Part shown: positions 31,229 to 61,038 of the stretch, piece by piece
Layout of the letters: each line of letters opens with the position of its first letter
Position numbering within the stretch: position 1 is the first letter of the stretch
Sequence record: NC_042116.1
Length of the DNA: 64,000 bases
Strand: one strand, 5' to 3'
The notes under the pieces: generated by a model
The model's database searches: none
Seen by the model: the letters and a program-made list of their open reading frames with translations, nothing else
What the model was told of the DNA's origin: nothing
Program-made: the position numbers and the translations under genes

Positions 31229-31347
31229 CGGGAATTGGTGTAATGGCAGCACAACGTTATAACATAAATTCTTGTAGTAGAATTTCACAGCAACCAAAAC
31301 AATTGCATAGGGAGCCGTGAGATAAGGTTCGATTCCTTGATTCCCGA
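31229..31347 (+). ncRNA. tRNA interrupted in anticodon arm by ACAGCA module (Ala-type loop TTGCA)
   Basis: acceptor CGGGAAT/ATTCCCG, D arm GGTGTAATGGCAGCAC, T arm TAAGG-TTCGATT-CCTTG; insert AAATTCT-tgtagt-AGAATTT-c-ACAGCA. Confidence 0.7.
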
Positions 31348-31416
31348 CTAAATAATGTTAATGACGCTCACACGTAGAAATACGTAGTGGGCTTTTTCTT
31401 TTTATTGAGTCTTATA

Positions 31417-50744: not shown

Positions 50745-50870
50745 GTGGGGTTAGCTCAGTTTGGTAGAGCAACGAAAGAAACCAAAATGGAATCTTGAAA
50801 AGGATTCTAACAGCATTATATCTTCTACTGTAAATTCGCGGGTCGGTGTGTTCAAATCCACCACCCCACA
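50745..50870 (+). ncRNA. tRNA interrupted by ACAGCA module (Tyr-type loop CTGTAAA)
   Basis: GTGGGGT/ACCCCAC, D arm GCTCAGTTTGGTAGAGC, ACGAA/TTCG, insert GAATCTT-gaaa-AGGATTC-ta-ACAGCA. Confidence 0.75.
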
Positions 50871-51025
50871 CAAAATTGGTAAAAAAGCTCTGCTGTGGGA
50901 CATTATATTCATCCACATGTTATTAGTTATTTTAAACAATCTGGTGAATATTTCAATGAATTGGATAAAACCGAACCAAGTAAATCAGATGTTGGTGGTG
51001 AATCAACAATAACTGGAAAATAAAA

Positions 51026-51388
51026 ATGAAAGTATATATTGATGACATTCGCGATCCAAAAAAGTACTTGACACCAGAACAGGCCGATGGTATTGTATGG
51101 ATTAAAGAAGCATGGAATGCACGTAACTTTTTAGTTGAACATGAATCCGTGATTGAAGTACTTCATCTTGATAATTACCTTGATGATGAACTCATTACCG
51201 GAACAGATATATTCTTTATGGTTGCAGGTGAAACCATATGGGGTGATCGGTCAGAATGGGCTAATCTTAAAACAATTTATTTGCATTCATCAGATACTGA
51301 TGTAATTGAAAAGTTGATGAAATATAAAGATGAGCTTCAAACAGCAGGGGTTGAATTAATTGACAACCACCAAGAAAGGAACTACTAA
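51026..51388 (+). CDS. cyclic-phosphate-processing receiver-like protein
   Basis: 'VYIDDIRDP...W.K....A...LHLDNYL...G...IYLHS'. Confidence 0.6.
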   Translation: MKVYIDDIRDPKKYLTPEQADGIVWIKEAWNARNFLVEHESVIEVLHLDNYLDDELITGTDIFFMVAGETIWGDRSEWANLKTIYLHSSDTDVIEKLMKYKDELQTAGVELIDNHQERNY

Positions 51389-51748
51389 ATGAAAGTTTAC
51401 GTAGATGATATTCGTAATCCAGCTAACCATCTCAGTACTGAACAGGCTGATGGTATTATTTGGATTAAAGAGTGGTGGGAAGCACGTAACTTCATTTTGA
51501 AGAATGGATTAGATATTGAAGTATTGCACTTTGATAATTTCTTAGGTGATCCAAATCATCGAACTGGTGGTGATATTCTAAGTTCAGTAATGTATCGTTT
51601 AAAACGTGGTAAATTTCCTAATTTGAAACAAATTTATTTACATAGTTCAGATAAAGAAGTAATTGATAAATTATATGATTCATTTATTGAACGTTGTAAT
51701 GAATATGGAATTGAGTTAATAAAAAATTCACGTCCAAATCGTAGTTAA
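51389..51748 (+). CDS. cyclic-phosphate-processing receiver-like protein (tandem paralog)
   Basis: 'VYVDDIRNP...LHFDNFLG..TG.D...IYLHS'. Confidence 0.6.
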   Translation: MKVYVDDIRNPANHLSTEQADGIIWIKEWWEARNFILKNGLDIEVLHFDNFLGDPNHRTGGDILSSVMYRLKRGKFPNLKQIYLHSSDKEVIDKLYDSFIERCNEYGIELIKNSRPNRS

Positions 51749-51754
51749 ACAAAT

Positions 51755-51875
51755 GGCGAGTTAGCTCAGAGGTAGAGCACGTAGAAACCAAGGATTCTAG
51801 TACTAGATTCCCGCAGCAACAATAACTCATACTATGATAAAGTCGTGGTCGGGGGTTCAAATCCCTCACTCGCCG
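51755..51875 (+). ncRNA. tRNA interrupted by GCAGCA module (Ile-type loop ATGATAA)
   Basis: GGCGAGT/ACTCGCC, D arm GCTCAGAGGTAGAGC, insert GGATTCTAG-ta-CTAGATTCC-c-GCAGCA, ACT-ATGATAA-AGT stem-loop. Confidence 0.75.
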
Positions 51876-51940
51876 CAAATAAATATCATTTTTCGAACCA
51901 ACTGTGATAAATAAAAATAAATCATAGAGGGTTCGAAAAA

Positions 51941-52573
51941 ATGAAACAATGTTTAAATTGTAATAATGAAATTGATGATAAGAAAAAGTTTTGCAATAGT
52001 TCGTGTGCTGCAAAGTACAATAATTCTCACAGGATATTATCGGAAGAAACAAAATCTAAAATTTCTAAATCTTTAAAAGGTCGAGAAGTTAAATTTATTG
52101 AAACTGAAAATGTTAAGTCTGGAAGACTTCGAGCGGGTGCTAAACGGAGAGAGGCAGCATTGGAACAATTGATGAAACGTGATTTTAATGATTTAAGTTT
52201 GGTAAGAAAAAAGAAACGTGTTAGAATAGAGCAAGAAAATAAATGTTTCAGGTGTGGATTGAATGAATGGATGAATGAACCATTAATATTAGAAGTTGAT
52301 CATATAGATGGTGATAATACTAATAATATAAGAGAAAATTTACGTGCATTATGTCCAAATTGTCACTCACAAACTGACACATGGAGAGGTACGAATTCAC
52401 GAAAAGTAAAAATTTCTGATGATGATTTAGTATCTATATTAAAAGAATCTAAATCCATACGAGATGCAATTTTAAAGGCTGGCATGTCAATTACTAGTCA
52501 TAGTTATAAAAGAATAAACTTATTAATTGAGAAATATCATATTAATTTTTTACTAAGGGTAAAGGAGGTATAA
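51941..52573 (+). CDS. HNH homing endonuclease
   Basis: CLNC..FCNSSC; 'CFRCG...LEVDHIDGDN.NN..ENLRALCPNCH'. Confidence 0.85.
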   Translation: MKQCLNCNNEIDDKKKFCNSSCAAKYNNSHRILSEETKSKISKSLKGREVKFIETENVKSGRLRAGAKRREAALEQLMKRDFNDLSLVRKKKRVRIEQENKCFRCGLNEWMNEPLILEVDHIDGDNTNNIRENLRALCPNCHSQTDTWRGTNSRKVKISDDDLVSILKESKSIRDAILKAGMSITSHSYKRINLLIEKYHINFLLRVKEV

Positions 52574-52575
52574 TT

Positions 52576-52782
52576 ATGTTCCTTGATGAAATTAAACACG
52601 TTCCGTTTCCTAGTTATAAATCATTAGAAAAGGCACGTACTGAATCATCTAAATCAATTAATCCAACAACATATGATCGTTATAAAAAATATCATTATCC
52701 AGTAGGTACTGAATTTCGTTTAGCAAAAGCTATTGATTCTTTAATTGTTAAAATTAAAAAGGTAATTAAATATGTCAGTTAA
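52576..52782 (+). CDS. hypothetical protein
   Basis: 68 aa, GGAGG RBS. Confidence 0.6.
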   Translation: MFLDEIKHVPFPSYKSLEKARTESSKSINPTTYDRYKKYHYPVGTEFRLAKAIDSLIVKIKKVIKYVS

Positions 52783-53377
52783 ATTTACTCCAGTAGTAAC
52801 GTCGTTAACAAATACACTTGTTGTTGAATTAGAATACGAACATGGTGATGCAGATGCAACTACATATGACTATGCATCCATCTCAGTACTTCCTGAACAG
52901 AAACAAACTATTGGGGGATTGCTTTCAATTATTGAGCATGGTTTAGAATGCCAGAATGCCGAACGATATGATGACACTATTGATCCATTTTTTGTTGATG
53001 AAACAGTAACCTATGACAATGACCAAGGTATTCCATTAGTTGGAGTTGAAATTCGTTTTGGTTTTGATTATAATGCTCCGAAAGAGAAAGGAACTGTAAT
53101 TGAAGTTGATCATGACCAGCAATATATTATTGTTCGTTCAGCAACGGGTGAAGTACACCAATTAGAATTTGATGAACTTGAAGATTGTATTACTTCATCG
53201 ATTGGTATTATGGTAATGGATGGTAGTGAAATCAGCTTTACATATAATGGTATTAGTGTTAACATTGGTAGTGTTGGTGATTGCACAGTTGACCAGCAAT
53301 ATAATGCATCAGGTGGTATTAACGCAGTTTATTACTATGATGAAAATGGTATTAAATACATTGTAACTGATTATTAA
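52772..53377 (+). CDS. hypothetical protein (HGD.D family)
   Basis: 'EYEHGDAD...YYYDENG.K'. Confidence 0.7.
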   Translation: MSVKFTPVVTSLTNTLVVELEYEHGDADATTYDYASISVLPEQKQTIGGLLSIIEHGLECQNAERYDDTIDPFFVDETVTYDNDQGIPLVGVEIRFGFDYNAPKEKGTVIEVDHDQQYIIVRSATGEVHQLEFDELEDCITSSIGIMVMDGSEISFTYNGISVNIGSVGDCTVDQQYNASGGINAVYYYDENGIKYIVTDY

Positions 53378-53583
53378 AATTTGCGGGAACGCTTGACAAA
53401 CTGCCAAACACCCCGTTAACATAGGGGGTTGTTTATGAAGTACTTTTATGAAGTATTAATTGTATTAGTAATTTTGGTTGGTCTTATTGCTTTCTGGTTA
53501 AAAAGTTTATTAATTTCAATACTAGGAATATTAATATTCTTAGTTGGATGTTTAATTGAATACGTTGTTAATAGGATAAAAAC

Positions 53584-53943
53584 ATGAAACATTTTCTTGA
53601 AGTATTATTTGTTGCTATTGCAGTAGTTGCTATGATGTTAGGTTATACAGTAATTGCAATTTGGTCAGCAATGTTTGCTATTATCTTTTGGGCTGCTCCT
53701 AATTCATCAGTTAAAAAAACTCCTGAAGATTATCTTAATGAATCTCGTAAATTAAACGTATCAGGAGCAGAGGTTGAGTTTGAATTTTTATCGGATAAAG
53801 GTAAAACTTTTACAGTTAAATTAGAACCTCATTTGTATATTAATGATGATATGCTTATGGATAGTTTGGTAGAATATATCGTTAAACACACTGGAATTCA
53901 AACCAGTTCTGAACGTTTAAATATCATTTCTATAAAAAAATAA
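53584..53943 (+). CDS. membrane-anchored hypothetical protein
   Basis: N-terminal hydrophobic segment. Confidence 0.65.
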   Translation: MKHFLEVLFVAIAVVAMMLGYTVIAIWSAMFAIIFWAAPNSSVKKTPEDYLNESRKLNVSGAEVEFEFLSDKGKTFTVKLEPHLYINDDMLMDSLVEYIVKHTGIQTSSERLNIISIKK

Positions 53944-53977
53944 TTATTAAAAACCCTTTTTTAAGGGTTTTTTAATT

Positions 53978-54063
53978 GGGGATATGGTGTAATGGTAGAC
54001 GCAGGGGATTCAAAATCCCCCGCCCTTAGTGGCGTGTCAGTTCGAGTCTGACTATCCCCACCA
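53978..54063 (+). tRNA. tRNA-Leu(CAA)
   Basis: GGGGA-TTCAAAA-TCCCC, long variable arm, CCA. Confidence 0.9.
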
Positions 54064-54183
54064 AATATTTTAATTAAACTCATTTTTGTACTTGACATAA
54101 ATCAAGAAATGTCTTACAATGTGTATATGTTCAGTAATGAACTAAACCGTTGTTAAACTATAAATTACCTTTTGGGTGAAAAA

Positions 54184-55770
54184 ATGAAAAAAACTTTATT
54201 AGCGTTATCTATTGTAGTAGCATCAATGACTGCATTTAACGCAACCGCAGCAGTCTCTTTAAAATCATCAGGCGACCAATTTGGTCCGGCTATGTCTGAT
54301 TTACTGCAATCAAATGAAAACGGTAACTGGAATCAGCAACGATTCATGAACACGTTCAATAATCGCTTTAATGGTACTGAAGCAGAAGCATTAGCATTGT
54401 TTAATGCTGTAAAAGGTGGTAATGTTCCAACATCCCTTGATAGCTTTAATAGTACTTTACCATCTTCAGGTGGTACTGTCACAAAAGGTGATAAGGGCGA
54501 TAAAGGTGACAAAGGCGAAAATGGTGCAGATGGTACAAAAGTATCATTAACTCCAGATGGTACTATTACATTGGATGATGGTAAAGGTGGAACCGTTCAA
54601 CAAGATTTGGCTACACAAGCTGAATTAAATCAAGAACGTTATAAACTTGAACAAAAAGATAAAGAACACGATGTTACTCTTACTGATCATGAAACTCGTT
54701 TAGATACAGTCGAAAATATGACGAATGGTTTAAATGTCGTTGTAGGGACTAATAAACAAGATATCGAAGAATTAAAAGACGGTAAAGCAGACAAAAAAGA
54801 TCTGGATAAAGAAGTTGCAGATCGTGATGCTGGTGATAAAGTACTAGATTCTAAAATTGATAATGTAGTATCAAATCAATCAAGTACTGATGCTGCACAA
54901 AATGCCGCCATTGATAGTAAAGTAGATAAAACTACACAAGCAGCGAAAGATTCAGCTCAAGATACTGCTATTGGTAATAAAGTTGACAAAAGTCAATATA
55001 ATACTGATAAAGTAATTCAGGGTATTCATGATGCTGCACAAGACAATGCAATTATCGGACTGGCAGTAACAAAAGCAGACAAAAAAGATCTGGATAAAGA
55101 AGTAGCTGACCGTAAAACCGCAGATAATAAATTGCAATCAAATATTGACAATGAAGCAAATGTGCGTAATAATGCAGATGTTGCATTGAAAAACAATATT
55201 GATAAAAATAAAGCTGACCAACTTGGTGTTGATACTGCACAAAATGCCGTTATTGATACTAAAGCAAGTAAGCAAGATTTAAACACTGAAGTTGATGAAC
55301 GTAAAGTAGCTGATAAAAAGTTGCAGAAAAACATTGACAATGAAGCAAATGTACGTAATAATGCAGACCAAGTTCTTAGTTCTCGCATTGATACAAATAG
55401 TACTACTTTAGTACAACACGACCAACGTATTACAAGTAACACACAACGTGTTGGTGTAGTTGAAAATCGTGTAACTAATTTAGAACAAAGTACTAATCGT
55501 CGGTTTACAGAATTAAAAAGTACTGTAGATGATAACCGTAAAGTTGCAAGTGCTGGTATTGCTGGTGCAGGTGCAATGGCAAATATTCCACAAGTATCGC
55601 AAAATAGTACTTTCTCTGTCGGTGCTGGTATTGGTGGTTATGATAGTGAGCAAGCAGTTGCTGTAGGATTCTCTGCTCGTATTAACAACAACATTGTAAC
55701 TAAGGTTGCTGTAAGTACAAATACACAATCCGAGTTGTTATGGGGTGCTGGTGTAGGTGTAGAATGGTAA
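54184..55770 (+). CDS. YadA-like trimeric autotransporter/adhesin protein with collagen-like repeat
   Basis: signal peptide MKKTLLALSIV..A; GDKGDKGDKGENG; repeated stalk motifs; C-terminal anchor 'SAGIAGAGAMA..PQ..VGAG.G.Y..EQAVAVG...GVGVEW'. Confidence 0.85.
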   Translation: MKKTLLALSIVVASMTAFNATAAVSLKSSGDQFGPAMSDLLQSNENGNWNQQRFMNTFNNRFNGTEAEALALFNAVKGGNVPTSLDSFNSTLPSSGGTVTKGDKGDKGDKGENGADGTKVSLTPDGTITLDDGKGGTVQQDLATQAELNQERYKLEQKDKEHDVTLTDHETRLDTVENMTNGLNVVVGTNKQDIEELKDGKADKKDLDKEVADRDAGDKVLDSKIDNVVSNQSSTDAAQNAAIDSKVDKTTQAAKDSAQDTAIGNKVDKSQYNTDKVIQGIHDAAQDNAIIGLAVTKADKKDLDKEVADRKTADNKLQSNIDNEANVRNNADVALKNNIDKNKADQLGVDTAQNAVIDTKASKQDLNTEVDERKVADKKLQKNIDNEANVRNNADQVLSSRIDTNSTTLVQHDQRITSNTQRVGVVENRVTNLEQSTNRRFTELKSTVDDNRKVASAGIAGAGAMANIPQVSQNSTFSVGAGIGGYDSEQAVAVGFSARINNNIVTKVAVSTNTQSELLWGAGVGVEW

Positions 55771-60918: not shown

Positions 60919-61038
60919 TGGAATTCAACAGCAAATCATTCAAAACACGTAGCATGTCGTAGGTTCAAGTCCTACCAGTACTTAATTGTACTGTAGCTCA
61001 GTCGGGAGAGCAGCCACCTTAAAAAGAAATGAATTCCA
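60919..61038 (+). ncRNA. circularly permuted tRNA within ACAGCA module
   Basis: TGGAATTCA/TGAATTCCA; GTAGC-ATGTC-GTAGG-TTCAAGT-CCTAC-CAGTAC-ttaatt-GTACTG-TAGCTCAGTCGGGAGAGC-A-GCCAC. Confidence 0.8.

Follow-up and report, generated by a model that had tools for sequence, protein, structure and literature searches.

The cREC domain (also written cRec) was named in 2021 by Iyer, Anantharaman, Krishnan, Burroughs and Aravind (PMC7824862), and the same laboratory returned to it in 2022 (PMC9503650). In both papers it is a divergent receiver domain, found alongside NAD/ADP-ribose enzymes and RNA ligases but never alongside histidine kinases. The activity predicted for the domain is the opening of 2',3'-cyclic phosphates, either on RNA or on ADP-ribose 1''-2'' cyclic phosphate (PMC7824862, PMC9503650). 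The domain was experimentally uncharacterised as of the second paper, which takes up Serratia phage BF, closely related to Yersinia phage fHe-Yen9-04, for its Sir2-2H-Nudix-cREC-PIN neighbourhood (PMC9503650).

Here we describe two adjacent genes, g434 and g435, in a 64,000-nucleotide (nt) stretch of fHe-Yen9-04 (the window; bases 248001-312000 of NC_042116 at 100% identity, a 354 kb genome of the genus Eneladusvirus). Both encode standalone cREC proteins and are located between two interrupted tRNA genes. Judged from their sequences, they are paralogous predicted phosphoesterases with an Asp-Asp / Asp / His-Ser active site and are probably active. The proteins are members of the described family, and this kind of protein is not new. 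Three details are new: a coupled active-site swap that sets their subfamily apart, recurrent tandem duplication, and a constant place ahead of an interrupted tRNA.

Two cREC paralogs with a predicted receiver fold

GenBank labels both g434 and g435 "hypothetical protein". The two proteins score 35.5 and 39.4 bits, respectively, against Pfam PF20274 (cREC_REC, "Cyclic-phosphate processing Receiver domain"; gathering cut-off 27), and a scan of the whole genome with this model retrieved them plus one other protein, g106. They also match phrog_1479, a family annotated as function unknown (E values of 3e-24 and 1.5e-26). About 1000 standalone relatives were returned by one profile search. The paralogs are 50% identical (59/118, E = 2e-35) and carry the motifs DDIRDP and DDIRNP at residues 6-11, VLHLD and VLHFD at residues 45-49, and LHSSD at residues 84-88 in both. 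The stop codon of g434 abuts the ATG of g435, suggesting coupled translation.

A preliminary description of this DNA had noted two paralogous proteins of about 120 amino acids (aa) between interrupted tRNAs, which is borne out by the open reading frames (ORFs), the identity, the motifs and the flanking tRNA models. It had also placed the pair in the cREC family, pending a Pfam comparison that both proteins pass above the cut-off, and had invoked a cyclic-phosphate prediction that agrees with Pfam's own description and with the literature (PMC7824862, PMC9503650).

The AlphaFold2 model of g435 was built with 72 homologs and has a predicted local distance difference test score of 93 and a predicted template modelling (TM) score of 0.86. 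Its strands and helices follow the order of a receiver domain such as CheY. The top Foldseek matches in the Protein Data Bank (PDB) are response-regulator receivers, with weak E values (5e-3 or worse) and TM scores of 0.5-0.6. Almost all of the top 50 matches from an exhaustive VIA-align search are likewise receivers, the best being CheY 3gwg_A (Z 10.8, 2.5 Å over 102 residues). A PDB sequence search with g435 gave nothing meaningful (E 1.1 or worse), so no solved structure of the family was detectable by sequence. From the model, we are confident that g435 is a CheY-like receiver fold, which upholds the fold anticipated in the preliminary description.

The active site was examined in an alignment of 138 sequences comprising the two paralogs, relatives from the loci and 120 database proteins. 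D6, D7, R9, D49, G60, H85 and Ser or Thr at position 86 show little or no variation, and g434 and g435 have every one of them, as well as T59. D6 and D7 occur in 134 sequences, D49 in 137 and H85 in all 138, whereas position 86 has Ser in 133 sequences and Thr in the other five. On the g435 model, D6/D7 follow strand 1, D49 lies at the end of strand 3 and S86 follows strand 4. We take these residues to be equivalent to CheY D12/D13, D57 and T87. The position after strand 5, which is equated with CheY K109 from its secondary-structure position only, is Asn113 in 76 sequences, a gap in 46, Arg once and Lys never. Because the active-site residues are conserved in both copies, both are probably catalytically competent.

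A coupled swap at two positions defines a subfamily

A maximum-likelihood tree resolves the cRECs into two clades with full support and a long separating branch. One clade consists of the cRECs linked to Nudix, among them the C-terminal domain of g106 from the same phage. The other holds the standalone cRECs, in which Yersinia phage phiR1-37, Citrobacter phage Tr1 and Proteus phage PM135 are basal and a core clade (support 97/89) unites the pair with its relatives.

The strand-3 motif D-[HN]-D-L-G is present in all 52 sequences of the Nudix-linked clade and the basal standalone group. Its second Asp (position 51, D+2) is absent from the pair, being Tyr in g434 and Phe in g435, and position 88 (T+2) is Asp in both. 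According to Bourret and colleagues, D+2 and T+2 are reportedly the variable residues flanking the phospho-Asp of receivers that set its reactivity. Asp at position 51 is combined with Asn at position 88 in 52 sequences, and an aromatic residue (Tyr, Phe, Trp or His) at position 51 with Asp at position 88 in 80. Five sequences have other combinations, and one with a gap at position 51 was unscored. Within the core clade, position 51 is aromatic in 81 sequences, 80 of which have Asp at position 88. As nearly all sequences with an aromatic D+2 have gained an Asp at T+2, we infer that the coupled swap reflects a remodelled active site and not decay into a dead one. The missing D+2 Asp marks a distinct subfamily and is no ground for exclusion from cREC. 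The swap also pinpoints two residues that could be exchanged in assays.

One member of the Tyr/Phe subfamily, on a 233-kb IMG/VR phage (L025:5650-6444), lies in a reading frame that stays open for about 137 codons ahead of the cREC start and has an insertion of roughly 30 residues after the strand-3 motif.

Tandem cREC pairs recur in phages

Each of the 18 GenBank records from the Eneladusvirus/Mimasvirus group has two adjacent cREC copies. The second ('b') copies, including g435, are monophyletic (99/97). The first ('a') copies of phages BF, CBB and XbC2 are also monophyletic (99/96), with g434 unresolved in the tree. Tandem pairs occur on three unrelated metagenomic phage contigs as well (L032:4643-5354, L040:1934-2720 and L041:5655-6351), which brings the number of lineages to four. 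The two copies on L032 are each other's closest relatives (100/99) and thus point to an independent duplication or to gene conversion.

In the Eneladusvirus/Mimasvirus group, the 'a' copies are strongly acidic, with an isoelectric point (pI) of about 4.5, and the 'b' copies have a pI of 6.2-6.4. The abutting genes, the tandem pairs in four lineages and the contrasting pI values would fit a heterodimer of g434 and g435.

Interrupted tRNAs flank the pair

The upstream interrupted tRNA ends 154 nt before g434, and the downstream one begins 6 nt past the g435 stop codon. Given the 6-nt spacing to the tRNA gene, the pair is probably on the same transcript as the phage tRNA cluster. Promoter and terminator scans of window positions 49000-54500 performed no better than on shuffled sequence.

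The upstream gene has acceptor, D and T arms and an insertion of about 50 nt, with a conserved hairpin and a CAGCA motif, located 5' of a CUGUAAA loop (anticodon region read by eye). The Rfam tRNA model matches the downstream gene with 46.4 bits at 51755-51875. ARAGORN calls neither gene, which fits an insertion.

In the downstream tRNA, insert boundaries and exon pairing were assigned by eye, according to how the flanks pair. The two flanks (51755-51781 and 51831-51876) can pair into a complete cloverleaf with a CGACU/AGUCG anticodon stem and a 7-nt loop containing U33, the anticodon GAU (51836-51838) and A37. The BF ortholog, also read by eye, has the stem CGACA/UGUCG and the loop CUUUUAA, corresponding to Lys UUU, in agreement with the GenBank tRNA-Lys calls in phage GAP32 and Erwinia phages. 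Since the flanks can form a complete cloverleaf with a 7-nt anticodon loop here and in BF, removal of the insert from the downstream tRNA is plausible. If a metal-independent nuclease or the RNA itself cuts the insert out, the ends would need healing of the type predicted for cREC.

The comparison with BF also shows that the anticodon has switched within one tRNA lineage, from GAU (Ile) at 51755-51876 to Lys UUU at BF L006:2864-2988, or the reverse. The insert and the remaining tRNA are conserved between the two despite the anticodon difference.

We searched for further copies with R1, a covariance model built from eight interrupted tRNAs that detects only the unpermuted interrupted-tRNA form of this module. 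R1 finds four interrupted tRNAs in the window (at 31229, 49922, 50745 and 51755), four in BF, and copies in every Eneladusvirus/Mimasvirus member examined. The first of the four in the window (31229-31348, 120 nt, 65.1 bits) lies 18 kb upstream of the other three, and its BF counterpart is at record position 277106-277225. An interrupted tRNA follows the 'b' cREC by 6-16 nt in BF, CBB, GAP32, XbC2 and metagenomic relatives. The exception is L016/L048, with about 375 nt between.

R1 found no interrupted tRNA in the complete genomes of Klebsiella phage Eowyn, phiR1-37, Tr1 and PM135, nor in five IMG/VR viral genomes, two of whose records are partial (G001 69% and G005 24% complete). Its matches in these nine phages are ordinary tRNAs of 72-92 nt scoring 42 bits or less. 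All nine encode a standalone cREC, two of them (G003 and G005) of the Nudix-linked type by the tree. Blastn with the downstream tRNA gave matches only in the Eneladusvirus/Mimasvirus clade. A specific link between the cREC pair and the interrupted tRNAs is therefore not supported, and the adjacency is the synteny of one clade. The preliminary description had proposed the proteins as candidate partners of the module-bearing tRNAs, or as healers of tRNAs cut by host nucleases, and had pointed to co-occurrence across phages as one way to decide. As far as co-occurrence can be assessed, the nine cREC phages without such tRNAs speak against that partnership, and where the interrupted tRNAs do exist the gene order is simply conserved.

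Repair genes of the phage and neighbourhoods of relatives

fHe-Yen9-04 encodes the RNA ligases Rnl1 (g060) and Rnl2 (g174) and a kinase-HAD Pnkp (g064), and its ligase and kinase genes are about 265 kb from g434-g435. Pfam models detected no RtcB and no TROVE protein in the genome. As both ligases are ATP-dependent and no RtcB was detected, cut ends would need conversion to 3'-OH and 5'-phosphate, and this leaves a place for a cyclic phosphodiesterase.

Beside Rnl2 are g176, a DUF2828/DUF7788 protein annotated as "RNA-binding protein", and the 2H-SAK phosphoesterase g178. The g176 gene (L029:4355-5881; genome 101854-103380) lies between g174 and g178 and is a candidate protein partner of the Y-RNA-like module RNAs of the phage. 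DUF2828 has been linked to Ro/TROVE, but the TROVE model and a PDB sequence search gave nothing, and a search of the literature on DUF2828 shed no light on g176.

A NAD/ADP-ribose island (L005:20-9277; genome 50019-59276) encodes an NMNAT-Nudix protein (g096), Nampt (g098), an Acb1-like 2H protein (g102; 63 bits to the anti-CBASS Acb1 family), Sir2 (g105), the Nudix-cREC protein g106 and g108. The last carries a PhoH-like annotation, and in relatives the orthologous gene encodes PIN and PhoH domains. Elsewhere among phages, Nudix and cREC are encoded separately within this block.

Several relatives of the pair are encoded near tRNAs. In the T5-like phage PM135, the cREC gene lies inside a tRNA array, between tRNA-Met and tRNA-Gly. 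On contig L038 it follows tRNA-Arg by 16 nt, and on L032 a suppressor tRNA is 2.4 kb away. A general enrichment of the subfamily beside tRNAs was considered and rejected: a tRNA occurs within 5 kb in only about four of 18 lineages outside the clade (PM135, L038, L032 and L021).

Other relatives neighbour genes for RNA end processing. Enterobacter phage FENT2 has an operon of a calcineurin-like phosphoesterase, Rnl1, cREC and an AAA_33 kinase, in which the cREC gene, a phrog_1479 member, overlaps Rnl1 by 4 nt. On L039, the second gene past that for an HD-domain CCA-adding enzyme encodes cREC. Looser settings include a calcineurin-like phosphoesterase near cREC in Tr1 and the same enzyme plus Sir2 on L063, and on L042 cREC adjoins an ORF weakly resembling the editing domain of alanyl-tRNA synthetase. 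The FENT2, Tr1/L063, L039 and L042 settings agree with published neighbourhoods (PMC9503650). No tRNAs or recognisable repair genes were found within about 5 kb of cREC in Eowyn, phiR1-37, L022, L025, L040, L041, L053/54, L058-61 and L059.

Proposed role and alternatives

We tentatively favour RNA-end healing of cut tRNAs as the role of g434 and g435, a reading to which we assign slightly less than an even chance. Metal-independent RNases, for example host anticodon nucleases, would leave a 2',3'-cyclic or terminal phosphate on a tRNA. The pair could open or remove this phosphate, with both substrate and catalysis being predictions, and Pnkp g064, Rnl1 g060 and Rnl2 g174 would then reseal the RNA. 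We favour this because relatives occur in tRNA arrays, in the Rnl1-cREC-kinase operon and beside a CCA-adding enzyme, and because the phage has the two ligases and Pnkp. The same role was predicted from operon links to RNA ligases (PMC7824862, PMC9503650). The RNA-repair reading of the preliminary description thus persists in its family, its fold and the RNA- and tRNA-repair neighbours of relatives, and falls away in the specific partnership with the module-bearing tRNAs.

Several observations weigh against end healing. Most other lineages of the Tyr/Phe subfamily lack tRNA or repair genes within about 5 kb, and direct linkage to an RNA ligase is seen only in the basal group with Asp at D+2, with none seen for the Tyr/Phe subfamily. 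Position alone is weak evidence, as the tRNA regions of large phages gather many unrelated small genes. The pI values of 4.5 and 6.4 are atypical for RNA binders. Pnkp g064 already has a HAD phosphatase domain. In T4, the phosphatase domain of Pnkp resolves cyclic ends. A further enzyme is thus not obviously needed in fHe-Yen9-04, where Pnkp may already do the cyclic-end healing. Finally, a full-text search of a collection of papers found no experimental test of the cREC domain and no cREC paper beyond the two cited.

The pair could act on small molecules, which we consider a less likely but serious alternative. It would hydrolyse or sequester ADP-ribose cyclic phosphates, signals of the cyclic ADP-ribose (cADPR) type or cyclic nucleotide immune messengers, and would serve in anti-defence or as an accessory to NAD salvage. 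Processing of cADPR or ADP-ribose cyclic phosphate is an equal alternative in the two cREC papers (PMC7824862, PMC9503650), and the sister clade is fixed to Nudix, Sir2, Acb1-like 2H and Nampt genes in fHe-Yen9-04 (through g106) and in other phages. The proteins are also small and acidic, like many small-molecule enzymes and sponges, and one relative is encoded near an ART-PolyVal gene. However, the long, fully supported branch separates g434 and g435 from that sister clade, and none of about 25 loci examined from their own clade adjoins a Nudix, Sir2 or Nampt gene. The genes that recur beside the cRECs of this clade are those for tRNAs and tRNA-end enzymes.

A specific form of the partnership raised in the preliminary description, in which the pair heals ends during a protein-dependent removal of the module from the interrupted tRNAs, we regard as improbable. 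Cleavage followed by the action of cREC, the kinase and Rnl1 would make the pathway a phage analogue of eukaryal tRNA splicing. It would account for a downstream tRNA that, read by eye, becomes a perfect cloverleaf with a canonical 7-nt loop without its 49-nt insert, as does the BF ortholog. It is also in line with the order of pair then interrupted tRNA in every clade member examined (with the longer spacing in one), and with a genome that encodes the kinase, the ligases and Sir2, a proposed 2'-phosphate remover (PMC9503650). Yet the subfamily extends far beyond the interrupted tRNAs, which are missing from nine cREC phages and from the surroundings of the distant metagenomic loci. The two features are coextensive within the clade, so synteny and function are inseparable there; two further interrupted tRNAs of the phage are not beside cREC, and no candidate splicing endonuclease was identified. 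A search for sequencing runs returned DNA metagenomes only, with no RNA run among them. There is accordingly only a slim chance that the pair opens the cyclic phosphate in a phage tRNA splicing pathway in which the 49-nt module is excised and the tRNA resealed by the kinase, Rnl1 and possibly Sir2. If true, such a pathway would give bacterial viruses an equivalent of the tRNA splicing of fungi and plants.

It is very unlikely, in our judgement, that g434 and g435 lack catalytic activity, serve as receiver-like adaptors, regulators or phosphate acceptors, and lie in the tRNA cluster by coincidence. Such a role would accommodate the subfamily's loss of an acidic residue (D+2) that is otherwise family-wide, the modest Pfam scores and the many uninformative neighbourhoods. 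The remaining catalytic set is nevertheless invariant in both paralogs and across the 138 sequences, the D+2 loss is paired with the T+2 Asp in 80 of 81 aromatic cases, and a histidine kinase partner is not expected in a phage.

Features of the locus

Apart from the tRNA-like genes, the immediate neighbours of the pair are an HNH endonuclease and ORFs of unknown function. The HNH endonuclease gene g436 (51941-52573), with a NUMOD3 motif, lies between the interrupted tRNA and g437 in fHe-Yen9-03 and fHe-Yen9-04. Erwinia phage pEa_SNUABM_50 has an annotated HNH gene at the corresponding site. As this spot has no HNH gene in BF, CBB, GAP32 and XbC2, g436 looks like a mobile insertion. The block of tRNAs and cREC genes is bracketed by g432 (50057-50431) and g438 (52772-53377), whose products share an N-terminal region (24% identity, E = 1e-5) that contains the motif EHGD[SA]D. 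No Pfam family matched either protein.

Table 1. Positions of the cREC genes and flanking interrupted tRNAs in the window
Feature	Position	Strand	Properties
Upstream interrupted tRNA-like gene (GenBank tRNA-Pseudo-GAA)	50745..50871	+	R1 92.7 bits (training member); acceptor and T-arm covariation
g434, cREC 'a' copy	51026..51388	+	120 aa; pI 4.5, strongly acidic
g435, cREC 'b' copy	51389..51748	+	119 aa; pI 6.4, near neutral
Downstream interrupted tRNA (GenBank tRNA-Undet)	51755..51876	+	R1 125.1 bits (training member)
49-nt insertion (GAAACC, hairpin, CAGCAAC)	51782..51830	+	Within the downstream tRNA, in the anticodon stem (5' strand)

Comparison with known systems

cREC is a widespread phage domain, and fHe-Yen9-04 offers a compact test bed with two standalone paralogs and one Nudix fusion. 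The same genome carries Rnl1, Pnkp, Rnl2, Sir2 and tRNAs that look in need of cutting and rejoining. The closest described protein is the Nudix-cREC of BF, the ortholog of g106. It has PF20274, the receiver-like fold class and the DD(I/L)R, D, TG and HS motifs in common with g434 and g435, and is likewise phage-encoded with a function that is predicted only. In contrast to it, the pair is standalone and in a separate clade, has Tyr or Phe in place of Asp at D+2 and Asp in place of Asn at T+2, and is encoded among tRNA genes and not NAD/ADP-ribose genes.

The rV5-like Rnl1-cREC-kinase operon, as in FENT2 (Aravind's type 2 neighbourhood), contains a standalone cREC of the same size that is also in phrog_1479. 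That cREC is single-copy, has Asp at D+2 and is linked to tRNA repair enzymes, unlike g434 and g435, from which the ligase and kinase genes are far removed.

The job predicted for cREC, the conversion of 2',3'-cyclic phosphates to ligatable ends, is that of the HAD phosphatase of T4 Pnkp and of 2H enzymes such as LigT and the cyclic phosphodiesterase of yeast Trl1. HAD enzymes and cREC both have an Asp-based active site at the C-terminal strand ends of a Rossmann-like sheet. The HAD and 2H enzymes belong to unrelated folds and families, and their activity is demonstrated, whereas that of cREC is predicted only. Besides its cRECs, fHe-Yen9-04 has Pnkp g064 and two 2H proteins, g102 and g178. 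If the pair does heal tRNA ends, the enzymes with which phages repair tRNAs against host anticodon nucleases would include a third unrelated fold besides HAD and 2H.

CheY-like receivers are the best structural matches (Z about 10) and have an acidic pair, an Asp and a hydroxyl residue at equivalent positions. The differences are an identity of only 9-19% to g435, the replacement of the Lys after strand 5 by Asn113, the invariant Arg9 and His85, and the lack of an output domain.

The rsr-yrlA-rtcBA operon encodes a Ro protein, a tRNA-like Y RNA, the RtcB ligase and the RtcA cyclase. A weak YrlA match was obtained with Rfam at window positions 60952-61014. The operon resembles our locus in placing a gene for a cyclic-phosphate enzyme, which is a predicted one here, beside tRNA-like non-coding RNAs. 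The analogy is conceptual only, and fHe-Yen9-04 differs in having no RtcB and no TROVE-domain protein by Pfam models.

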